A stretch of 32,000 nt of DNA from Wallemia ichthyophaga EXF-994 (Eukaryota > Fungi > Basidiomycota): NCBI RefSeq assembly GCF_000400465.1, contig NW_008806282.1, positions 120,001 through 152,000 on the forward strand, read 5' to 3'. A program made the position numbers and the translations under genes. The number at the start of each line of letters is the position of its first letter. Positions within the stretch are counted from its first letter, which is position 1. The notes beneath the pieces are model-generated. The model was not told where the DNA came from and did no database searches. It saw nothing but the letters and a program-made list of their open reading frames with translations. Shown here piece after piece: positions 2,022-20,004 of this stretch.

Positions 2022-2771
2022 TTAGATGGCGTTCTTGAAGAACGTCGTAAGGCGCTCGTAAGCTTCGACGTACACCTTCTTAGCCTCCTCATCCTGGAGG
2101 TTACATCTAGCAGCAGCAAAGCCGTGAATTGCCTTCTCAGTGTTAAAGTGATGGTACGCATTTTTCTCCTTAAATTCGTTTGACGAGAGGATATCAATAA
2201 CCTTCTTCACTTCACTTCCATCCTCGTCTTTTGATGGGAAGAATCCAATTGGTGTTTTCACCTTCTCCACCACGCCAGCATCCAGCATGGCTGGGTGGAG
2301 AACAGCAACAGCGTCAAACAGCTTAGCATCTTGTGTAGCTGCGTTGAGTGCGATGGCTGCACCCCAGCAGAAGCCAACAAGACCAACCTTGTCATGTTTA
2401 GCACGCAACTCACCGCTAATGTTGATCAACTCAGGGATACGTGCTGGTGGTGCAGCCACAGTGGAAAAGAATTTGCCGAGCTCAGACTGATCGGCTTCAT
2501 TTCCCGGAGGAAACTTCTCTAAAGGGAAAGGTTTACCGCGGAAGAAGTCAGGAAGAACAACTCGATATCCCTTGTCTGCTAATATATCTGCACCTTGCAG
2601 CGTCTGATTAAAGTAGCCAAAGATATCGTATATTCCAACTAGCACAGTCTTTGAGTCTGCTGGACCGGTAACGTAGGCCTTGTTGAAGTAGCCAACCTTC
2701 TCGTATTGGCCTTTTGGTTGGTAGTTTGTTTGATCGATTACGGGTGGGATTGAACAGCAAGCAGCAGACAT
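2022..2771 (-). CDS. Dienelactone hydrolase family alpha/beta hydrolase, 249 aa, intronless
   Basis: N-terminal MSAACCSIPPV typical of fungal DLH; DIFG motif; nucleophile elbow GFCWGA (G-x-C-x-G); HP motif; catalytic His in HGFAAAR. Confidence 0.9.
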   Translation of the reverse strand: MSAACCSIPPVIDQTNYQPKGQYEKVGYFNKAYVTGPADSKTVLVGIYDIFGYFNQTLQGADILADKGYRVVLPDFFRGKPFPLEKFPPGNEADQSELGKFFSTVAAPPARIPELINISGELRAKHDKVGLVGFCWGAAIALNAATQDAKLFDAVAVLHPAMLDAGVVEKVKTPIGFFPSKDEDGSEVKKVIDILSSNEFKEKNAYHHFNTEKAIHGFAAARCNLQDEEAKKVYVEAYERLTTFFKNAI

Positions 2772-3040: not shown

Positions 3041-5261
3041 ATGTCAATTGCAGCTGCGAGATTACCACTGGATTTAGAGCTCCCCAGTGAGAAAATTCAT
3101 ACAACACACATCACAGAAAAGTCGCAGAAGCTGCAGAAGCACGACAGTGCATCTACACTCAGCCTCCCTCTCCACGACTCTGTTGAAGTTCAAGAAAATG
3201 TTGAGACAATCCAAGTAGAAGCCGATACTAACCACATGAACAGGCTCACTGTCGACATTGACGCGACTAGGAACGTTTCAGCATCTCCCTCAGGCACATA
3301 CAATGAGAATAAACGCTCATTTGCACCCAGCCCTGCGAGCGAACAGAACAACGTCGAGGAAGTTGGTCTGTTTCAGAAGTCTTACTATCCTAACTTTATA
3401 CATGCATTGAGAGACTCAAAGTCTACTAGCAGCGGCAGGACTATTATTCTTTGCCTGGATGGTACTGGGGACCAGTTTGATGGCGATAACTCTAACGTCG
3501 TGCGTTTTTTCAGATGCTTGAAGAAGGATGAGCCATCGAAGCAATTAGTCTATTACCAGGCTGGATTGGGTACTTATGTACGCGTTCATAGGCTTCTAGT
3601 CAAGACATTACTGACTCATGTCACAGACCACTACGCGCTCTGCGAACCCAATCACTACCAGGTTGTCAGCAATTGGTGATGTGACTATTGGTGAGTTCTG
3701 TTTTGCCAAGTTGGGTTACTGCTCACACTCAACCAGGCTCCGGGCTCGGTCATCACATTGTAAGACACTCAAATTACGTAAAAAAGAGCGCTAACAGCGA
3801 AATAGCGCGACGCCTATGCATTTTTAATGGAGAATTATACCAAAGGCGACAAGATATGCATGGTCGGTTTCTCTCGTGGTGCGTACTCAGCTCGTGGTTT
3901 AGCCGGAATGCTTCAGAAGGTGGGATTGGTGTTTTACTCCGAATGAGCTGACTTCTTGACAAAGGTTGGACTCCTTCCCAAGGGAAATAGAGAGCAGGTG
4001 GGATTTGATTGATTGATTGATTGATTGGTTGGTTGATTGGTATTAGGTGGGATTTGCATACCACATGTTCAAAGACAACTCAGATGAAGGCTGGAAGATG
4101 AGTCAGCTCTTCAAAGAGACCTTCTCAATCAAAGTGAATATCCACTGGATAGGCGCATGGGACTCAGTGTCGTCTATCGGGTTCATTCCGCGTGATCTAC
4201 CCTTCCACAAATCGAACAATGCCGTGAAAAATTTTACGCATGCAGTAGCACTCGATGAGCACCGCGCCAAATTTAAGGCAGGTCACTGGACGCGCTCTGA
4301 TGAAATGGAGGTACGCATAGGTCCATGGCAGCGTCGAAAGGAGGAATTGAAACCTAAATTCGGAGACATAAACGAGATCGAGGAGGACGATGTTATACAG
4401 GAGCAGAAAGACACAGAAGAAGATCCCAAAAGGGCGGTAGAGAAGAAGCGCGCTAAAGTGATGAAAAACATCAAGGAAATACGTAAACGTACACAGAAAT
4501 CTAGTGGTGAGGATGATACCAGTGTAGATGCATTCAATCCGGAGATTCAGGCGCAATTTGAGATGCTGTTCGAGCTTCAGGATAAGGAAGATCTCAGCGA
4601 GACTAAAGTAAAAGAGGTGTTTTTTACAGGTTGCCATGCAGATGTTGGGGGAGGGTAAATAAAACTGGACGCATCATGGTAACTTTTCCACTAACGTCAT
4701 GATAGGGCCGTTGCCAACCATACTAGACATTCTTTGGCTCGTATACCACTCAGGTTCATGCTAAGACAAGCCTTCAAGGCTGACACAGGGCTCTTGTTTT
4801 CGACAGATCTTCTCGACTATTACGGCCTCGACCTCAACACATTGTACCCATACGTCACTCGCCGCCCTCCGGCGGCTGAGGGGGCTCCAGAAGGCTTTCC
4901 GGAGCTTCCTCAACAAGATAACCCCCGCAGAGTGTTTCCAGAAGCTGTCGAAGATTACTACGATGCGTGAGTGCTTTTAGTTAGCTTGGATGATGCTAAA
5001 AGTCTCAGGCTATGCCCTTATCATGATTACCTCAATTTGTCAAAAGGCTGGTGGGTCCTCGAGCTTTGGCCGCTAAGAGAGATCTACCAAGATGGTCACG
5101 GCAAGTATAGAAAGCGTCTTGCGCCAAACCTTGGCCATCACCGCGCCATAAGAGGTACTAACAACAAGTTCCACCGCTCAGTGGCTATTCGCCAGAAACA
5201 GATTGGATATGATATTAAAGCGCGCATGGTTGACTCGCCTACTGCTCACTGGGTAGGCTGA
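3041..5261 (+). CDS. DUF2235 (Tle1-like, YEL023C-like) alpha/beta-hydrolase domain protein, multi-exon
   Basis: Motifs RTIILCLDGTGDQFDGDNSNVV, YYQAGLGTY, MVGFSRGAYSARGLAGML (G-x-S-x-G), IGAWDSVSSIG, HAVALDEHRAKF, EVFFTGCHADVGGG and LARIPLRFM, joined by GT-AG introns such as 3998-4046. Confidence 0.9.
4003..4040 (+). repeat. (GATT)n/(GGTT)n microsatellite making up most of intron 3998-4046
   Basis: Sequence atttgattgattgattgattgattggttggttgattgg read directly. Confidence 0.95.
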
Positions 5262-6563: not shown

Positions 6564-8082
6564 ATGGGATTTTTCGAGAAGAAAGATGCTTTGGATGTAG
6601 AGTCAGCAGCACATAAGCTTGATTCTGATAGCAACCTCGAATCCTCCATTAAAGAGAAGTCTCTTTCTTGGCAACAAGCAAGTTTTTTACTTTTGCTTGA
6701 ATACATCGTCATCGCATTGCTAGCGCTGCCTTCCTCATGGGCTAGTCTTGGCTATGGTGGTGGTACCATTGCAACCATCATCCTTGGTCTCACTGCCGGA
6801 TATACTCAACACGTCTTATGGCGCTTCTGCCTCAAGTTTCCAGAAGTACGCGATATTCTTGACGTGGCTGTTATTCTCGTTGGTGGTGGTGCGTCTTATT
6901 TTTTTATCATCAATTATGAGCTAATGTGACAATATCAGGTAAATGGGGTAAAGTGGCGTGGACGTGCGCATTTATCGGATTAGTACTGAATAACGTTGCT
7001 ATTATGGGATTGCATATTGTCCAATTCAGCCTTAGTATCAACACTCTCTCCGACGGTGCGAGATGCACGCAGGTGTTCGCCGTTTGTGGCACCCTCCTCA
7101 TGCTGCTCATTTCCCTCTTCAGAGAATTGAAGCACATGTCTCTTCTCGGGGCTGTAGCTTCCGGAAGTATGCTCGGCTGCATTATACTCGCAATGATCTT
7201 CTCAGGCGTGCAGGATCTCCCCCCCAACCACTCAGGCGGGCCAATCATCGTCGAGCCGTGGGCCCGAGAGGGAGTCGGTCTTGTAGACGGCAACAACGCT
7301 GTTCTCAACATCCTCTACACCTACGTTGGTCACATTCTCATACCGACCTTCGTGGCTGATATGAAGTGAGTCGTCATCTCGACTATAAGCCTCCCCCTAA
7401 ACACACCCTAGAAATCCAAAAGACTTTGGTAAAGCCATCTACGTCTCTATCACTGCAGAAATTGTCCTCTTCTCACTTGCGGGTGGTATCATATACTCGC
7501 AGGTCGGTGCGGCGGACATGACAAGTCCTGCATACGGATCACTCCAACCTGCCTTTCAAAAGACCATTGCGGCATTTGTGTTACCAACCGTAACCATTGT
7601 CGGCGGTGTATATTGCCTCGTCACTGCGAAGACTGTCTTTTCGAGAGTATTCGCTTTCAACTCGGTACACAGACGGAGTCATACCGTGAAAGGATGGTCT
7701 GCATGGATAGTCATCATTATTCTGCTGTGGATATTAGCTTACATCATCGGACAAGCAATTCCATTCTTCAACGATCTCATTTCGCTAATTAGGTGGGTTT
7801 AATTGCTTTTAGCGGCCTATGAATCACACTTACACTCATCTCAGCTCGCTGTTTGACAGCTGGTTCGGTTTTGTCTTCTGGGGCATTGGATATTTCTTTA
7901 TCTACCGCCGCAAGTCCTTCAGCGGTTGGGGCATCGTGGAGGCGCCACTCAATATTATCATCACTATCGTCGGATTTGTCCTATTGGGCTTGGGCACTTA
8001 TACTTCCGTAGAATCCATTATAGAGAGCTATGACACCGGCAGCATTAAATCACCTTTCTCATGCGTCGATAATGGCTTTTAA
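6564..8082 (+). CDS. Amino-acid transporter (Aa_trans/AAAP family, Mtr-like neutral amino-acid permease), 4 exons
   Basis: Motifs LSWQQASFLLLLEYIVIALLALP, LGYGGG, YTYVGHILIPTFVADMK|NPKDF, MTSPAYGSL, GQAIPFFNDLISLI|SSLFDSWFGFVFWG; many hydrophobic TM segments; introns near 6890, 7367 and 7791. Confidence 0.9.
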
Positions 8083-8327: not shown

Positions 8328-9872
8328 TCACATAACATATTTGAAATCATAACGTTCATCACCAGTAACGCCATTTCTATCTTGTTCATCTTTTTCCTCC
8401 TGCGTCATGGCTTCCTTGCGTTTGTTCCGTGCTGTGTAGTTGACCCACTGGGCAGCATACAGGACGCATGACATAGCCATCACTGACATACTGACAGCGT
8501 GTCCAATCCTGTTGGTAGTGTAGATTTGGCCTGCAATGATACCACCAATGTTACCAAAACTCTGGTTCATTCCCATTCCAGTTGAGCGCTTAGTTACACC
8601 GCTCGCGTTGGTGTTCCACATTGTTAGATTAAGGCCAACTGTTACGTATATTCCTGTCCCGCAGACAAAGCATGCGAAGTATTGTACACCGACTATATCA
8701 TCAACGCCAAGCAAGATGGCATATCCGGCAACAGTAATAAGAGACGCTGTGATCAGCATCGGTACTCTGTGATTGTAGCGGTCAGCAACCATGGCGCATA
8801 TGACATAAACGATCGCAGCCCAACAATAATTCGCAGCCGAGAGAAGATTGGCATTCACGTAATTGAATCCTAGGTCTTGAATAATTAGCACGAGGAATGT
8901 GGAATATCCAAATAGACAAGTGTCAGCGCCCAGCTGCGCGATGCAAGAGTAGTATACGGCTGGGTCTTTGAGACATTTTTTCACTTCTGTCTTATAATCA
9001 CCCATGAACTGATACTTTGCCCCGTGTGCATACCTCACTTGCATTAGATATTTCTCCCTCTCATTGAGATACCAGGCCGATTGACTATCCTCTGCCAGAA
9101 GGAAGAAGAGCACGATGCCCCAAACGACGGTGAGCAAGCCTTCAAATAGGTAGAGAATCTGCCATCCTTTTAAACCACCACCATTCAATTGTAAAAGTCC
9201 AGAGGAGATAAGGCCACCGAATGCGGAAGAGATGGCTGCTGCGACAAACAACATTGCTGTCCTAAATGCAATCTCGTTTCTTTTGTAAAAAAATGTGATG
9301 TAAATAGCAAGGCAAGGGAAAAGAGCGGCCTCAAAAGCACCTAAAATGAGCCTCAGAGCAACTAGAGTTGCAAAATTTTCCTGAAAACCACTGCCAATGA
9401 CTACAGCGCCCCACAAAATCATTATAGCGCTCATCATATATCTTACCGGAAATCTTTTCATAAGACTTGATAGAGGTGCTTCAAACAGGACGTAGAGTAC
9501 GTAGAACACACTGGTTGCAATGTTAATGCCATTCGAGGGCATGTTGTTCAAGTCTTCTACCATTCCGCCTGAGGCTGCATTTCCAATGTTGCTTCTCTAA
9601 TATGGCGTGAGTGTGAGGTGTCTGAAATAGACAACTACGCACGTCTAAAAAAGATAAGAAGTAGGAGAAGCTAGTAGTAGTCAGATTGTATCTAAAGAAA
9701 TACTCCAAACTCACCCCAAAACAGGACATATGAATAGGTCTAGCTTTCGCACTAGCTTTTTTTCTTCTTTGGGATCAATTTGGACAGTGGAGAGGTCTTC
9801 CTCATGGTCATTGATACGGAAAGACTGGACTGAACCGTTGATTGAATTGTTGTCCTTTTCTTTGTCGTTCAT
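8328..9872 (-). CDS. MFS transporter, Dal5/Tna1-like (anion:cation symporter family), 3 exons
   Basis: Start MNDKEKDN...EEKKLVRKLDLFICPVL, then FSYFLSFLD|RSNIGNA; motifs YVLFEAP, RLILGAFEAALFP, FFYKRNEIAFR, GWQILYLFEG, AWYLNEREK, KRSTGMG, FGNIGGIIAGQIY, ERYDFKYVM. Confidence 0.9.
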
Positions 9873-9911: not shown

Positions 9912-10268
9912 GATAAGGAAGTGATAGTAATATATGACCAATTCTTATCTTATCGCTTAGAAGAATGCTGATAGCTAACTTCTGACTTCTGCTGACTTCT
10001 GCTGACTGCTACAAAGACACGAGTCTTCGACCACCTTCGGCTCTACTCCAAGAATTAATAAAACCAGTCTATTTATATCACCGAGCTGCGTGATCTTGTT
10101 CACTGCAGGTTGAAATTTGACAGCTTTATAGTCAGATGACGTCGTCAATTTCGTCTATTGGTTCTTCCCTGCGGAAAATCCGATTGAGATTAGTCTTATG
10201 AATATTTTCAGCTCACGCTTCCTGCAGTGCCCTCCTGACCCAGTCACACCATCGGCTGGGCAGATAAG
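9912..10268. promoter_or_regulatory. Cluster of four GATAAG/CTTATC elements in the divergent MFS/oxoprolinase promoter
   Basis: GATAAG 9912-9917, CTTATC 9944-9949 and 9949-9954, GATAAG 10263-10268; this is the consensus for nitrogen-regulatory GATA factors (AreA/Gln3/Gat1). Confidence 0.6.
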
Positions 10269-10363: not shown

Positions 10364-12799
10364 ATGACAATTCCAGACAGATCAATACGCGTATCCGCAG
10401 ACAGAGGTGGTACTTTCACAGATATTATAGCCAGCTTTCCCAAGAACGGAAAGCACGAGGAGATTGTGGTGAAATTGCGTGAGTTTAGTGGTGGAGGTAC
10501 AAAGACTGCACTAACGAGTACTAGTATCGCAGGACCCCAACAACTACGCAGATGCTCCTACTGAGGGTGTGTAGTACTTGATTTGATCCGAGAAGCCCCC
10601 ACTTAACCCACGCAGGCATCCGCAGAGTGATCGAGATAGCCACCGGCGAATCTATTCCACGTGGCCAGAAGGTTCCATCGAAGAAACTCGATAATATCCG
10701 CCTTTCCACCACTGTAGCGACCAATTCACTTCTCGAGAGGAAAGGGGAAGAGCACGCGCTGCTTATCACGAAAGGATTCAAAGATCTTCTTGAGATCGGC
10801 AACCAGTCACGTCCAAAGATATTTGATTTGTCAATTAAGCGCCCATCGACGCTGTATAATGACGTCATCGAGGTAGATGAGCGCGTCACTCTCGTTGGAT
10901 ACACGCAAGATCCAGAAAGTGGAGAGAATGCGGTGCAGTTCGACGCCAAGGGCCGCATTGCCCGTGGCTACAGAGGCAAGGGTTGGGATGGTCAAGGTGA
11001 CGCAGAAGGTCCTGGCGACGTCGTGATGGGTGTGTCGGGCGAGGCTGTGCGTATACTCAAGCGACCTGATCTCGCTGTTGTGCGCCAGGACTTACAGAGG
11101 CTTTACAAGAAAGGTATACGCTCACTCGCTATTGTGTTCGTGCACTCATACACATACCCCAAACACGAACAGGAGGTGGCTGATTTAGCTCGCAGCATCG
11201 GTTTCACGCATGTGTCTGCCTCCTCCCAGCTCCTGTCTATGATTAAAATGGTGCCAAGGGGGGTGAGCGCAACTGCCGACGCATACCTCACCCCGGTCCT
11301 CTCAGACTACATCAACGGCTTCTTCCATGGCTTCGACGACGCTATCGGAGATGGTAGCGGTGCTGACGGGGGGTGCAAGGTAGAGTTCATGGGCAGCGAC
11401 GGCGGGCTGTTAGATTTGAGGAACTTTTCGGGCCTCAAAGCAATCTTGTCAGGACCTGCAGGTGGAGTAGTCGGTTATGCGCTCACTTCCTGGGACGAAA
11501 AGGCTAGAATACCAGTCATCGGTTTGGATATTGGCGGTACCTCAACCGATGTAAGCAGATTCGCTGGCGCTTACGAGACAGTGTACGAGACCACGACAGC
11601 AGGTGTTTCCATCCAGTCACCGCAGCTTGATATAAACACCGTAGCTGTGAGTTTTATAGCTAAATCCTCGCGCATCTAACAAACAAACACAGGCCGGTGG
11701 TGGATCGTGTCTTACTTTTAGAGACGGGCTGTTCCACGTTGGACCACATTCAGCGGGTGCACACCCCGGTCCAGCCTGCTATAAGAAGGGTGGACCGCTG
11801 GCCGTTACTGATGCGAATCTGTTTCTCGGTCGACTTGTTCCATCGCGCTTCCCGCGCGTGTTCGGACCCAACGAAAACGAGCCAATCGATCCATCGGCAT
11901 CTGCGGCGGCATTTGGGGAGCTAGAGAGGCAGATCAAGGCGGAGACCAACGCAGAGCATGATTTGGACGCTATTGTCTATGGATACCTCAAAATAGCTAA
12001 TGAGACAATGGCGAGACCAATACGCACGCTCACGGAAGCTAAGGGCCATGCGACGTGGTCGCACATTCTCGCAGCTTTCGGGGGTGCTGGTGGTCAGTCA
12101 GCTGCTGAGATAGCCCAGATACTAAAAATCTCGCGCGTTGTTATCCACAAATACTCGTCTATTTTATCAGCATTCGGTTTGTCGCTTGCAAATAGGACTT
12201 TCGAGAAACAACTGCCAAGTTCAAAGCTGTGGAATCAAGACAGCAAGCCTGAATTCACGAAGAGGTTGGATGAGTTGGCGGGAGTTGTCAAGCAGGAGTT
12301 GAATTCACAGGGCTTCGATAACGAGAGAATCACTCTGGAAAGATACCTCAATATGCGCTTCGACGGGAGTGACACAACACTCATGATTACGACAGACTCG
12401 GACGAACACTTCCACGAAGCATTCAAGGAACGCTACATCGACGAATTCGGCTTCCTTCTTGAGTCTGATATTATGGTCGACGATGTTAAGGTGAAGGGGA
12501 TTGGTAAGACTTATGATCAGCTCGGAGAATCTGCGCTGAGCGAGTACTCCAATTTGAAGCGCAGGCCACTCACGAAAAAGGACGCTGACAGTACACAACC
12601 ATCCTACTTTGAAATTCAAGGCAAGGGCCAGAGAGTAGAGACGCCGGTGTATGTGTTGGATAACTTGCAAGTTGGAGACACCATCACAGGACCAGCCATC
12701 GTAATCGACAATACGCAGACTATCGTGGTGTTACCAGATTGGATTGCAACATCTACCACTCAATGTTTGTTTCTTGAGTGCGAGAAGCTGAAACAGTAG
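10364..12799 (+). CDS. ATP-dependent 5-oxoprolinase, N-terminal (hydantoinase A/HyuA) half only, 764 aa, 4 exons
   Basis: Exons 10364-10478, 10525-10566, 10616-11646 and 11693-12799 total 2295 nt in frame. Motifs DRGGTFTD, IRLSTTVATNSLLERKG, ILSGPAGGVVGY, DIGGTSTDVSRF, PQLDINTVAAGGGS, AHPGPACY, TDANL, FGGAGGQ, ITGPAIVIDNTQTIVV. Stop follows CEKLKQ. Confidence 0.92.
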
Positions 12800-13069
12800 A
12801 GTGGAGTGCATGTAGAAATTAAAAGGATTAGAAATTCAAATGTATCTACGTTTCGAAATTAGAGTATAATAGTAAAGCAAAAAGGTATCAATTGAGTGGT
12901 GTATTCCATTGATAGATCTAAAAAGGGAATAGAAGGTAAGGGTTAGTAGAAATGTTAATTTGGGAGAAAATTCAAGTTATCAATCTAGCTGTGATTGTCC
13001 GGTATTAATGCGTCAGTTATTAGTGAAAAGAAGAATTAAAAAAAGTGGAATTCCTGTAAATCATCCAAA

Positions 13070-14864
13070 CTACTCCAAGCTCGCGTTGTAGTACTGATAG
13101 TTGTTCGGCCCAGGCGTGCGAACCGAATCTTCAACGAGGGGCGGAGGCTGGTAAGCGAACTGACCCTCGCCGTTATCAGTATAGTCTTCGCCGAGCCCGA
13201 GCGCCGACATCCTATCAGCAGACGTGGGCGGACAAGTGAAGCCGAAGCTAGCTACAGTTGGTGTCCTAAAGTCGTCCTCGTAGAATGAATGTGTTGAAGA
13301 GGCTGGTATAGTGTCGAAGGAGGGAAGCGATTGGGTTGTGCGTGGGACGGTGTAATCGAATTCCAAGTTAGACGACTGAGTGTGCTGAATGGGAGCGTAG
13401 GCCATGTCAAAGTGATTAAGGTGACCGATGTGGCCAAAATCGAAAGGAGAAACAGAGCTCATGGTACTGATTGTAGGGAGCGAGCTGCCGTAAATGGTTT
13501 GTGGTTGAGAATACCCAGTGTTGTGTATTTGTTGTTGTTGTTGTTGTTGCTCCTGCTGCTGCTCGAAATAATTCAGCTCCCTGGCAAAAGAATCCTCAGA
13601 ACGGTGTTTGCGCATTGGGCCAGATGAAGGCTCAATAGCTTCTCCAAAAGGTAGCAAGCCGAGATGCTCTGGTGAGCCATATTGGCTGGAGGAAGAGGGG
13701 CGCGACGAGTACTGACTGGCTGAGTCTGAGTTAGTAAGCGAAGACATGTACGAGCAGTCAGACAGAGTGTCTGAGTCTGAAGTCCTTGCGAGGGAACCAC
13801 TATGGGTACTACTATGGAAGCTGCGGTAGGCATCCTTGCCGTCTCTCGAATGTGTGCGGGTATGCACCGCGAGGTTATCAGAGCGGGTAAAAGACTTGAG
13901 ACACACGTCACATCTAAATGGACGCTCTTTGGTATGGGACCGCCTGTGTCTGCGGAGATGTTCATGCCGCTTAAACGCTTTGCCGCATTCGTCACACCGG
14001 AAAGTGCGCTCATCGGGTAGCTCGTTAGTGAGGTGCTCGAGGTGGTTCCAAGGGGGCAGTTTGGAAGGGGTGTCTTTGTGTGCAAGACTGCGCTTCTGTA
14101 AGATCTTTCTCAGAGTCTTTCCCTGCTTGTAGAACTCAGAGCCATTTTTTGTGCCGAGGAGAAAGACGTGAGAGAGGTTGTTGTCGTTGAGCTGTTGGTG
14201 GAGAGAGCAGTCATGGAGCCATTTGAATTTGAAGCTGGGCTCAAAAGTTGCAATTGTAGAGGCCTGTGCGGAAATTAGAAATTGAGGTACGGCGGGAGTA
14301 ATTGAATAGCCAACGCACGGGGTTGCCGGCAGCCTCGCGTTTCAAGTCACGCTCCAAGGCGTCGAGAAAAAGTCTGTCATGCGGCACAGCGTGCCAATTG
14401 AAGAGCTTTTGCTTCTTCTGGGTGCGGATAGCGCCATATCTGAAGAGAAGATCGAGAAGTTCACTGCCATTATCTTGAATGATGCTGTCAATACCAGGTT
14501 TTAAGTTGCGTAGGTCAGAAGAGATGCCCTCGTTGAGTTTTCTGTGGTCACGGATGTGTCTGCCGAGAGAGACAAGTTTAAAGCCGACGATCTTGAATAG
14601 GTCGGATGAGGATATGTAGAGATCGTTTAACCAGCGAATGCAGTGAATGTAATTTGATTCGCTCTCTAGTGGTATTCTGTGTATTAGAGCATGTGGATGG
14701 AGTGGACCTAGATCCAGCTCGTTATTAAACAGAGAAGGAGCCTCAATTAAGAAATTATTTAGAATTTTAATCGAACCAGCGATTTGAACGTCTATTTTAT
14801 CCATGTCTAATGGTTTAACAGGCACCAGGCCAAATTGTGATGATCGTTGAGTTGAAACACCCAT
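13070..14864 (-). CDS. STE12: Ste12-like transcription factor (STE domain + two C2H2 zinc fingers + S/Q-rich tail); start at 14864 or 14804; intron 14318-14264
   Basis: STE domain: EGISSDLRNLKPGID, LFRYGAIRTQKKQKLFNWHAVPHDRLFLDALERDLKRE. Fingers FRCDECGKAFKRHEHLRRHRRSH and FRCDVCLKSFTRSDNLAVHTRTH, translated by hand upstream of the listed ORF; poly-Q tract. Confidence 0.88.
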
Positions 14865-16839
14865 GTCAACGACATCTGAAGTTGATGCCGAGTGCACACT
14901 CCTCGAGCAGAATTTGACTAAAGTGAATAATTTGACTAACTCAATGAGCTCAATGGTGTTTAGTCTAGAGGATAGGATGACTAGACTCGAGGGTGCGGTA
15001 ACTCCGCTGCAATCATCGACCAATGGTTTGGATGTTGTCTGTAGGAGTGAGTGTAGGATTGTGTGTTCGAATCTCTCCTAATTCATTTGATACATAGACA
15101 TTCAATCCTCACTCAACGCCATTGATAGCGATCAAAGACTATCAACGATCACCAGCGATGACGAACAAGCAATTATCGCAGGTGCTGATTCAAATGATAT
15201 TAGACCTTACTTGAAATTAGTTTGTTCGCTATGCAATCAACTTAAACACCTAAAACACTCCCAATGGTCTTCTTCTAAGAATGCTGCCACCGATCTCAAG
15301 AACCATGTTCAATCAGGTACACAATCCCTATTAAGGGTGTTTCAGGGCTGGGTTAGAGACGTAAGCATCCCAATTGATGCCGATAGCTGGAATCTCTTGG
15401 ATTTCCCGGGTATACCTCAACACGCCGTCGCGAGGTTAAGTGCCTTTATTGATGCTGTTTATCCTATACTAGACCAACTAGATGACTCTGCGTATACTCA
15501 TCCTTCTATCATTTACTCCTCTGAACGCGCACGCTACTTAAACATTTCTCTCCAGCCAATCTACAAAAAGTCTCAATTTTCACTTGATGCTCATTCTAAA
15601 TCTGGTCCACTTGGTACTCCTTTATATCTAAAAGGTTCTCAATCTCTTTCATCCCTCATAAAGACTGCAATAGCAATGGCTGACGTCGAGTGGCTCTCTG
15701 TCGTTGCTTTGTTTGGCAGGTGTGTTGATGATACAGGCGATAAGAAGGAAACAAATCCCTCAGATTACTCATCTCACTCAATCCATTCCCCCTTTACCTC
15801 TGCAATTGCACCAGCTGCCACTCTCATCCACTCCGCTACTTCAAACATATTCTCTCTTGCACGTTCAACCCCTCTCAAACACATTTTCCCTGTCTTAGAT
15901 GTTATTGAAGGTGTTACTCCACTCGCTGAGCCCTGGGACAAAGCCGTCACTGCGAGATGCACTCAGCCATCCACCAACCAAGTCGCCGCTTTGGTTGAGG
16001 AGTGTCGCTCAATCGCCCTGCACAGCTTTTCCGATGTTATCAAGCGCGTGCGCTTGCATAACGAAGAGAAACACATGACGGATGTGTCAGTAGTGACGAA
16101 TGATACCATTGCATATCTCAAAGAAATACCCGCATATTCCAACACTATGGAGCAGCTCCTGAGGCGTGTGGAGTGGGGGGGAAGGAGTGAACAACGCGCA
16201 CCACGCGCCAACCTCCTCGAGAATTACCTCCGTGATGTACTCACTAATCTGATAACCACACTCACGCACCTCAAACCAAATGCCTACACTACCATTTACA
16301 CGCTCAACAATCTCTCAGTGCTGCGACGCGAGCTGATAGAAGCTTGCGAGCCGGTATCACTCGACCCTAGCAAAGCCGACTCCCCCTCAAACCGCGACAT
16401 AGGAGATCTTTTAGGTGAAGCAGCTGAAGATGCACTCAACGACGCTTTGCGGACGTGGCGCATGGCGTATCTCGACGCAGTGTGGAAACCGTCCCAGGTG
16501 GCGCTGACGTCGGATGAGCTGAGCACCACAAATCAAGGGCCACACGTCCCCACGGCATTAGGGGGGAGTGCCGAACGTAAACAGCTCATCAAGGATAAGT
16601 TCAGCAGATTTAACGAGGCATTTAGCCATCTCGAAAGCTTGCATACCAAGCACCCCGTCGCCAAACGCGACAAAACGCTGCTTGGCAGACTAGGCAAGGA
16701 GTGCAAAGCTATGCTCCTACCTCCATACGCTACGCTCTGGGGTAAAAACCAGTCGGGGGACTTTGCCAAGACACCGTCAAAGTATATGCGCATCACACCT
16801 GATCAGCTCGAGGCGCGTATTGATGGGTTGTTTGTGTAG
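14863..16839 (+). CDS. EXO70: Exocyst subunit Exo70; intron 15047-15097
   Basis: N-terminal coiled coil LLEQNLTKVNNLTNSMSSMVFSLEDRMTRLEGAVTPLQ..NIQSSLNAID; C-terminus IYTLNNLSVLRREL, KDKFSRFNEAF, DFAKTPSKYMRITPDQLE; exons splice in frame. Confidence 0.88.
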
Positions 16840-16997
16840 ATGGCTTGTCTATTTAGTGTGCGAATTGGCGTGTACATTGCGTCTTTATATTTGTTTTACT
16901 TTTTACTTTTGTGTGCGCGTGTGTGCATGTGTGCATTTGCGTCACTTGATTAGCAACTTCAATCACCAAACAAAATACACCAGTCAAAAACCAGAAG

Positions 16998-19900
16998 ATG
17001 GGAGTACCAGGATTATGGGATGTGAGTGGCAGAATGGCGTGAATGTACCGCTCAATTGGCTCCAGCTCCTCCGCCCAGCCGCGTGCTCCCACTCGCTATC
17101 GCGGATGTCTGTCGATGCGTTTGTAGCAAACAACCGTGGACACCGGGGACTGCGCGTAGGCGTAGATGCCTCAATCTGGCTTATACACTCACAAACAGCG
17201 CCTGGCGGTCTAAATCCAGCACTCCGCACGCTTTTCTTCAAACTGAGCAAGCTGATGACGCTGCCGATACTCCCTCTATTCGTGTTCGATGGGCCAGGCA
17301 GGGTGGGTTATGAGAGTGCGCAGTAGACCGCCTTTTTAATGCACTACCCACAGCCCAAAATGAAACGCGGTAAACAGGTACGCGGGAGACAGCCCCGCGG
17401 ACTTAAAGACTTTATTAAGCTTATCGACGCTTTCGGCTTTGAGCATCACCAGGCGCCCGGTGAAGCAGAGGCTGAGCTAGCCCATCTGTCCAAGATGGCC
17501 ACCATCGACGTCATCCTCTCTGATGATGTCGATAGCCTGCTTTTCGGCGGTGTCAAGATTCTGCGCAATTGGTCCCTCACTCTGTCGGGGAACAGCAGTC
17601 GATCTCAGCTGCAACTGCAGGCAGATGGACAAACCCGCACCCATGATTCACTTGCTGCCGACGATCACCGCGTCGAGACCTACACACTTTCCGACGTGCA
17701 CAGTCATCCCTCCACCGCCGTCACGCCTGCTGGGCTTATTCTCGTTGCGCTACTTGCAGGCGGCGACTACCACCCAGTGAGCGGGAAATATTTCTCTCAT
17801 TGCACTGTCTCACTTCAATGCAGGCCGGAGTGCAGAACTGCGGGACCAAAAACGCTTTCGGCTTGGCGCGAGCAGGTTTCGGGGAGAAGCTGATGGAGGG
17901 TGTGAGCTTGACACCGCCATCTGAGCTACCTTCCTTTTTGGATGCGTGGCGGGCTGAAATGCGCGAGGAGCTCACTCACAACACCTCCGGTCACCTCAGC
18001 AGCAAACGTCCAGCAGTAGCTGCAGCGCTAACGCCATCTTTCCCCGACATGGAGGTTCTCGCACGCTACACGCACCCACTAACGACGGCGTCGACCGAGT
18101 GCGACGCTGTTTACCGCGCCTCACTCGCCGCAGTCCGTTTCGCGAAAGAGCCCGATATCGCAGCCCTAGCCCGTTTCTGTGAGGAATACTTCGAGTGGGG
18201 TGAACGCTCGCGGATCGTTGCCAAATTCCGCAGCAGCGTCTGGGACGGGGTGTATGTGCGTGCGCTGCGCGCTGCCACTTGCGCTCTGGATAGTGGGGAA
18301 TGTGGGGAATTCAACGAGGAGGCCAAATCTCATCTCGTCCGCATACACCAAACTCGCAACAAAAGCAACGCAGAAAGGTACGTCGAGTACCGCATTTCAG
18401 TCGATCCCGCACCTTACGTTCGCATCGTGGAGATGGCACTTACTGGTGACATGCGCGCTTTGAGAGAGGCTCGTAAACGCAACGACCCTGCTCTGCGCGA
18501 TCTGCGCAACGCCTTGCCAGATGAGAACGGTGGTAACAGCCTTGGCACGGATGTCTCCTCGTCTAATTTGGATCTGACAGCGGATCCTACCCCATCTCAA
18601 ACTCAAACTCAAACTCCATCGCAGTCGCTGAATACACAAAAATCTAAACCACCTACTGACCAACACGCCCCGCTGAGAATGTGGGTGCCGTCGCAGATTC
18701 TCCGCGCCGCTTTGCGCAATGAGACGGATGCTTTCGATAGCGGACGTGGTGTTCATTCCAGTGGTAGCGAAAGAGTGGCGACAGTAGCCCCGAGCCGCAT
18801 CCCACACCCTGCATCTGCTTTAGTACGCGAGAAGACCATTGTGGATGAGCAAGATAAGCAAGATGAGCAAGGAGATGGTAATGGTGGCGGTGATAATAGT
18901 GACATTACTACTCGATATAGAAGTGTCAGAGGTAGTAGAGGTGGGAGAGGTAGAGGTGGTGGTAGGCGCAGACGCGCTACTGCCAACGACTTCACCACAA
19001 ACACGCACAACACCCTCACTCGTCACGCTACCATAGAAGACCAGCCTGATTACACTCAAGCTAACAACTTTGATTTCGTCGATTTCACCGACTCGAATAA
19101 CCCCATCGTCCTGCCTTCTCCACCCAAGGTGAGTCGTAAGAGGGCGACAAAGGGCGGTGTAAATGTGGCGAGTACGGAAGGTTACGTAGGCAACCGCGCA
19201 AGCACTCAACGCACCCAGCAAACTCAACACACTCAACGCACTCCACGCAAAACCAGCGGTAGTAAGCGCCACGTCGATAGTACGTCGACTGACAATCTCG
19301 GTGAGCGTTTGAAGCGGATTGGTGCGGTGGGAGAGGGTGCACAAGACACTGCAGCGCCTGAAGATTTAAATGCCAGGGAGGAATTAAGAGATTCTGAAGA
19401 CGCAGCATACTCAGGATACTCAGGATATTCAGGTCATCCTCAACATCATCGACACTCTCCGCCCAGCTGCAGCAAAACTCCATCAAAACCCAAACAATAT
19501 AGCCTCGCCAGCCCTCTGGATGCATCGCTCAGTCCACCGTCGCCTTCGGCGTTGTTTGGTTTGGGTGGAATGGGTGGAAATGAGAAGGAGAAGGGGGAAT
19601 TTGGGGAATATGCTCTGAGGCATAGGCATAAACCTAAAAACAAAAACAAGGAACCGATACAGATTGACGATTCACCCGTAAACACAAACAACACCCAGGA
19701 CCTAGATGGAGAAAGAGCGAAAACGACCCGTACACACGCAAGCCACTCACCTATCAACATTTCGAGCGACGAAAGCTCAACGCCGCGGGGGAAGAGTACG
19801 AGCGTGGTGAAGGGGAGTAAGAGTAGGAGTAAAAAGAGAGATTCACTGTCGCCGTCGTTGCGGCGTAGGAGTGAGGGCAGCAAAAGAAAGAACAAGACAC

Positions 19901-20004
19901 TTACGGGTGTGTTCGCCGGGCGTAAGCCTGTGCATACGCCTGCATCTACGTCTGCCCACAAGCAGTTAAACAGCAAGACAAACGACGTTATAGATCTGAC
20001 GTAG
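16998..20004 (+). CDS. YEN1: GEN1/Yen1-like XPG-family Holliday junction resolvase with long disordered C-terminal tail, 4 exons
   Basis: MGVPGLWD|LLRP, RVGVDASIW, LRTLFFKL, LFVFDGPGR|PKMKRGK, APGEAEAELA, ILSDDVDSLLFG, LVALLAGGDYHP|AGVQNCG; low-complexity tail. Confidence 0.88.

Follow-up and report, generated by a model that had tools for sequence, protein, structure and literature searches.

The gene at positions 10364–12799, on the forward strand of the 32-kb stretch of Wallemia ichthyophaga DNA analysed here (the window), probably encodes the α-subunit, a HyuA-type, actin-like ATPase, of a 5-oxoprolinase that in basidiomycetes is encoded by two genes. The protein comprises the ATP-binding A part of the enzyme and is referred to here as A-only. 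We propose that, in the stem lineage of Basidiomycota, a fused gene of the OPLAH/OXP1 type was cut within its interdomain linker, and that the A half (~765 aa) and the B half (~580–600 aa) would have been inherited since then as two genes, unlinked where checked.

Four exons (10364–10478, 10525–10566, 10616–11646 and 11693–12799), separated by introns of 46, 49 and 46 nt that all begin with GT and end with AG, are spliced into a coding sequence of 2295 nt. Its translation is a 764-residue protein that ends in ...CEKLKQ*, contains no internal stop and differs in a single residue (I645M) from a W. ichthyophaga protein deposited at NCBI. A Pfam search of this protein identifies the domains Hydant_A_N (4.6e-54), Hydantoinase_A (1.5e-85) and Hydant_A_C (9.4e-09), and finds no Hydantoinase_B domain. 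All three actin-like ATP-binding motifs of the family (DxGGTxTD, DxGGT and GxxPGP), as defined in the study of caprolactamase (PMC8453981), are present. The γ-phosphate motif P1 reads DRGGTFTD (residues 13–20, codons 10400–10423), the β-phosphate motif P2 reads DIGGT (residues 357–361, codons 11569–11583), and the adenosine-binding motif is GAHPGP (residues 418–423, codons 11757–11774). The TAG stop codon (12797–12799) lies at the start of the linker that joins the A and B domains in the fused enzymes, as seen in an alignment of the junction. Spliced translation, Pfam and motif search agree with the initial annotation, which described four exons, an intact 764-residue protein free of internal stops and a full set of HyuA ATPase motifs; its statement that the protein ends where the B domain should begin is borne out by the junction alignment.

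The orthologue in Wallemia mellicola is likewise 764 residues long and 83% identical. Between the two species dN is 0.14 and dS is saturated, so that no dN/dS ratio can be given; this low rate of non-synonymous change alongside saturated synonymous sites indicates that the A gene is under purifying selection. Intron positions have turned over in the same interval. The W. ichthyophaga gene has three introns, at positions 115, 157 and 1188 of the coding sequence, the first two of which (window 10479–10615) enclose a 42-nt micro-exon at 10525–10566. The W. mellicola gene (locus L001, 10001–12568) has six, at positions 115, 324, 610, 1006, 1188 and 1600, and only two positions are common to both genes.

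Proteins of the same architecture are widespread in basidiomycetes. None of the 119 further homologues listed for the W. ichthyophaga protein carries a B domain; 117 of them are 746–790 aa long and consist of A domains only, and the other two are longer models with unrelated extra domains. Besides W. mellicola, these matches include a wide range of Agaricomycetes at 61–66% identity. The matches listed include orthologues of ~765 aa from over 100 Agaricomycetes; others are present in Pucciniomycotina, where an exhaustive search of representatives clustered at 50% identity recovered an A-only protein from Pseudohyphozyma (57% identity to the Wallemia protein). The nearest relatives that are not A-only are fused enzymes of ~1230–1375 aa with 50–54% identity, from Dimargaris, a chytrid, a beetle, a nematode and a hemipteran bug.

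A tree of 106 A domains unites the basidiomycete A-only proteins in a single clade (support 100), in which Wallemia is sister to the Agaricomycetes and has the longest branch. The A-only group is in turn embedded in a larger clade of fused fungal enzymes (support 99), with the animal enzymes adjoining. Because the A-only clade nests among fused eukaryotic enzymes, the tree indicates that the A-only gene descends from such an enzyme rather than from a bacterial hyuA, and that the B part was lost from it once, early on. We also considered a bacterial origin by horizontal transfer and rejected it: the nearest relatives are fused eukaryotic proteins, and CapA, the bacterial caprolactamase subunit, is much more distant. 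Two basidiomycetes, a Tremellales species (P0130) and Desarmillaria tabescens (P0129), additionally carry a fused A+B paralogue. These paralogues group with ascomycete enzymes (Aspergillus, Fusarium, Diplodia) and not with the basidiomycete split pair, which points to an old duplication or to transfer from Ascomycota.

A matching set of B-only proteins, about 570–620 aa long and containing Hydantoinase_B alone, is present in all three basidiomycete subphyla. Two successive searches, one with the Dimargaris B half and the other with a B-only protein of Moniliophthora as query, listed 120 matches each. They recovered B-only proteins from Pucciniomycotina (Rhodotorula, Puccinia, Melampsora, Sporobolomyces, Leucosporidium, Atractiella and Pseudohyphozyma), Ustilaginomycotina (Malassezia, Meira, Violaceomyces, Testicularia, Sporisorium and Pseudozyma) and Agaricomycotina (Tulasnella, Ceratobasidium, Dichomitus, Fomitopsis, Gelatoporia, Pleurotus, Mycena, Heterobasidion and others). 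A tree of 184 B domains groups 35 of the basidiomycete B-only proteins in a single clade (support 100). As for the A-only clade, its neighbours are fused enzymes of early-diverging fungi (Glomeromycota, Kickxellomycotina and a chytrid). The B-only protein of Dichomitus squalens retains the Asp-His-Asp-His metal tetrad, aligned to D41/H99/D102/H124 of CapB, the second caprolactamase subunit (metal-ligand numbering from PMC8453981).

Several further features of the B-only set were observed. Meredithblackwellia, Leucosporidium creatinivorum, Rhodotorula kratochvilovae and Sporobolomyces johnsonii each have two B-only paralogues (P0369, P0406–P0412). The B-only proteins of Moniliophthora and Paramarasmius are 72% identical to the second Pucciniomycotina set, compared with 64–68% to those of other Agaricomycetes. 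A 580-aa B-only protein deposited under the fern Adiantum nelumboides (P0348) is separated by at most 0.01 substitutions per site from proteins that cluster with Meira miltonrushii, and is probably a fungal contamination of the fern assembly.

Both an A-only and a B-only gene were found in at least 15 species: Pseudohyphozyma, Moniliophthora roreri, D. squalens, Fomitopsis serialis, Gelatoporia subvermispora, Hymenopellis radicata, Crassisporium, Hebeloma, Hypholoma, Pholiota conissans, Irpex rosettiformis, Artomyces, Marasmius oreades, Auriscalpium and Crepidotus. The two genes of Pseudohyphozyma are located on different contigs of the same assembly. The Pfam domains of neighbouring genes show no B gene closer than 10 kb to the A gene in W. 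mellicola, Earliella or Pseudohyphozyma. In Pseudohyphozyma and D. squalens, an A gene is likewise missing from within 10 kb of the B gene. In the junction alignment, the A-only proteins end a few residues past the last strand of the A domain, and the B-only proteins start 8–20 residues ahead of the first B motif, DPILL..F.NRFMS. The ends of the former and the starts of the latter thus flank the interdomain linker, which places the cut within it.

How the two polypeptides might work together is suggested by bacterial caprolactamase, in which CapA binds ATP, CapB holds the metal site, and the subunits form an (αβ)2 complex with a 40-Å tunnel (PMC8453981). The scheme proposed there, in which A activates a lactim that B then hydrolyses, has likewise been proposed for oxoprolinases (PMC8453981). 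On the CapAB model, ATP bound by the basidiomycete A subunit would be used there to phosphorylate 5-oxoproline in its lactim form. An internal tunnel would carry the activated intermediate on to the B subunit, where the ring would be opened at the metal site to yield glutamate. A and B would be expected to assemble in the same way, as an (αβ)2 complex with a tunnel, and the A-only protein by itself is unlikely to run the 5-oxoprolinase reaction.

Judged from sequence relationships, 5-oxoproline is the most likely substrate, since among basidiomycete proteins the split pair is the one most closely related to the animal enzyme, and the Wallemia protein is the only A-type protein listed for its genome. 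It is unlikely, but conceivable, that the two-gene enzyme is as described and acts on another lactam or hydantoin, for example N-methylhydantoin or some other cyclic amide. The family does include ATP-dependent N-methylhydantoinases, caprolactamase and carboxylases, the pairs of B-only paralogues in several Pucciniomycotina suggest diversification, and the fused paralogue carried by some basidiomycetes could be the true 5-oxoprolinase. However, no basidiomycete protein is closer to the 5-oxoprolinases of animals and early-diverging fungi than the split pair (50–54% identity for A, 57–60% for B), and the N-methylhydantoinase (E 1e-50) and caprolactamase (E 1e-38) in the PDB are far more distant. 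In addition, W. ichthyophaga has one A-domain protein in the rows listed from its published domain table, so that, on those rows, any 5-oxoprolinase of this family in the species must use it.

This table (Table S1 of PMC3849046) gives the W. ichthyophaga proteome one Hydant_A_N protein and one Hydantoinase_A protein in the rows listed from it, and these A-domain entries adjoin STE, Exo70 and DRMBL in genome order. With one A-domain protein there is therefore no second, fused copy, as far as these rows extend. The same rows hold no entry for PF02538, the Hydantoinase_B family, in W. ichthyophaga, and a Wallemia B-only protein is not among the 120 matches listed in either B search. Its absence from the latter is to be expected because of the long Wallemia branch: when 121 A-only proteins are ranked against an outgroup query, that of Wallemia comes last, so that a Wallemia B protein would be expected below several hundred others. 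Given that the A gene is conserved and under selection and that the pairing of A and B is invariable elsewhere, we infer that the Wallemia genome probably carries a B-only gene as well, against which the absence from the listed matches does not count.

If instead Wallemia had lost its B gene, the A-only protein would act alone or with another partner, as an orphan ATPase. The Wallemia genome is reduced, and no B gene was found for it in the window, in the B matches listed or in the rows listed from Table S1. Yet this negative result is uninformative for a long-branched lineage in searches with 120 matches listed each, and the A gene, which is under strong purifying selection, has kept all its ATP motifs. 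Both genes are present in every basidiomycete species visible to both searches, and the proposed hydrolytic metal site of the related caprolactamase resides in the B subunit (PMC8453981). We therefore regard a B-less Wallemia enzyme as distinctly unlikely.

The locus itself offers no place for a B half. The A gene and its convergent neighbour, which contains an STE domain (STE12), are separated between their stop codons by a spacer of 270 bp (12800–13069) with 31% GC, compared with 51% in the A-gene coding sequence. The spacer has stops in all three forward-strand frames and, by tblastn, no coding potential for a B domain, in line with the earlier description of 270 bp of AT-rich sequence ahead of the STE12 stop with no room for the B half. 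Across the 32-kb window, the B halves of three fused enzymes, used as tblastn queries, gave chance matches only (E ≥ 0.6), and no Hydantoinase_B domain was found in the larger open reading frames scanned. Gene order in the window is the same as in W. mellicola, where two assemblies show Het-C, DLH, a Tle1-like hydrolase, an amino-acid transporter, an MFS transporter, the A gene, STE12, Exo70, GEN1 and DRMBL; the W. mellicola locus is also without a B gene.

The neighbouring genes have some features of their own. Upstream of the A gene and divergent from it, across a spacer of ~490 bp, lies a gene for an MFS transporter of the anion:cation symporter type (8328–9872, reverse strand), whose best NCBIfam match is TIGR00893 with a score below the cut-off. 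The promoter region common to the two genes contains a ~10-bp tandem repeat (CTTCTGCTGA-like units) at 9975–10012. Just beyond the MFS gene is an amino-acid transporter gene of the Aa_trans type (6564–8082, forward strand). This arrangement of two transporters is kept in W. mellicola and is absent beside the A gene in Earliella and Pseudohyphozyma; the pair could be a candidate uptake system for the substrate of the A enzyme. Further upstream, a multi-exon gene with a DUF2235/T6SS Tle1-like hydrolase domain (3041–5261, forward strand) is flanked by a dienelactone hydrolase gene (2022–2771, reverse strand) and the end of a Het-C gene, in the same order as in W. mellicola. On the other side, a CAA/CAG run (13520–13560, reverse strand) gives the product of the STE12-like gene a poly-glutamine stretch, QQQEQQQQQQQ, in its C-terminal part. 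The W. mellicola annotation presents Exo70 and the GEN1/XPG nuclease as one protein of 1424–1448 aa (L001, 14447–19310), whereas the two appear as separate sets of open reading frames in the window (15211–20004); the W. mellicola protein is likely a merge of gene models.

A recent fission of the fused gene, specific to Wallemia, has only the A-only architecture itself in its favour and is very improbable, as one clade holds A-only orthologues that end at the same C-terminal position, from all across the Agaricomycetes and also from Pucciniomycotina, and the B-only clade spans three subphyla. The initial annotation had offered two readings of the split, a lineage-specific fission with the B half encoded elsewhere or an A-only paralog with a different partner or function. 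Fission proves the better of the two, given the position of the A-only proteins inside the fused clade and the existence of a matching B-only clade, with the Wallemia B half itself deduced from the pattern in other species. Its restriction to a single lineage does not hold, as the split extends across Basidiomycota. Equally improbable is an artefact of assembly or annotation (a truncated fused gene or a misassembly), because two W. mellicola assemblies and another W. ichthyophaga strain have the same 764-aa protein with an identical stop position, in the same order MFS–A gene–STE12. The proteins of more than 100 species share this end point, and all three forward-strand frames of the spacer contain stops.

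The closest relatives of the Wallemia protein outside the A-only clade, by sequence and by tree, are the eukaryotic 5-oxoprolinases (EC 3.5.2.9) such as human OPLAH and yeast Oxp1. It shares with them the three A-type Pfam domains and the ATP motifs, and its A domain falls within the eukaryotic clade. Unlike these enzymes, which are single fused A+B polypeptides of about 1250–1290 aa (PMC8453981), the Wallemia A part is a separate protein of 764 aa that ends at the linker. In having separate A and B polypeptides, the basidiomycete enzyme resembles the bacterial CapAB (PDB 6YRA), OplAB and HyuAB, in which A is ~700 aa and B ~580 aa long. It shares with CapAB the ATP motifs of the A subunit and the Asp-His-Asp-His site of the B subunit, the latter seen in the B-only protein of D. 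squalens. CapA and CapB are also the best NCBIfam matches, with scores far below the equivalog cut-offs, but the sequence of the Wallemia protein is only distantly related to that of bacterial CapA (E 1.7e-38). The bacterial genes are adjacent, with capB and capA sharing an intergenic region (PMC8453981), in contrast to the fungal A and B genes, which are unlinked where checked. The fungal split also differs from the bacterial two-subunit organization in being secondary, arising from a fused ancestor.

With respect to the A-only proteins already annotated as 5-oxoprolinase in other basidiomycetes, the Wallemia protein is an orthologue (61–66% identity) of the same length and end point and in the same clade. 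The gene is thus an ordinary basidiomycete orthologue, itself already deposited as '5-oxoprolinase'. The split as a whole is publicly annotated in basidiomycetes, under the names '5-oxoprolinase' and 'Hydantoinase B/oxoprolinase', and is not novel for Wallemia. The novelty that the initial annotation had seen in it accordingly falls away, A-only and B-only genes being the norm across Basidiomycota. A literature search, with a coverage that excludes the paper of Leonard & Richards (2012, PNAS) on fungal fusions and fissions, found no description of a split or fission of the basidiomycete oxoprolinase. A more far-reaching reading, to which we give a low probability, is that the division of the gene into two unlinked ones was a unique, rare genomic event that marks Basidiomycota and is new to the literature; in a stronger version of this idea, Wallemia would have lost B and its A protein would have a function independent of it.

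For Wallemia itself the finding has little significance, and the pattern across the phylum is of modest value. The A-only protein that bears the name '5-oxoprolinase' serves as a warning for annotation pipelines. The fission may possibly be of use as a rare-genomic-change marker for Basidiomycota. A fused enzyme that would need an internal tunnel between its two halves would have been cut once, early, and kept as two genes, and would thus represent a eukaryotic counterpart of the bacterial two-subunit enzymes.
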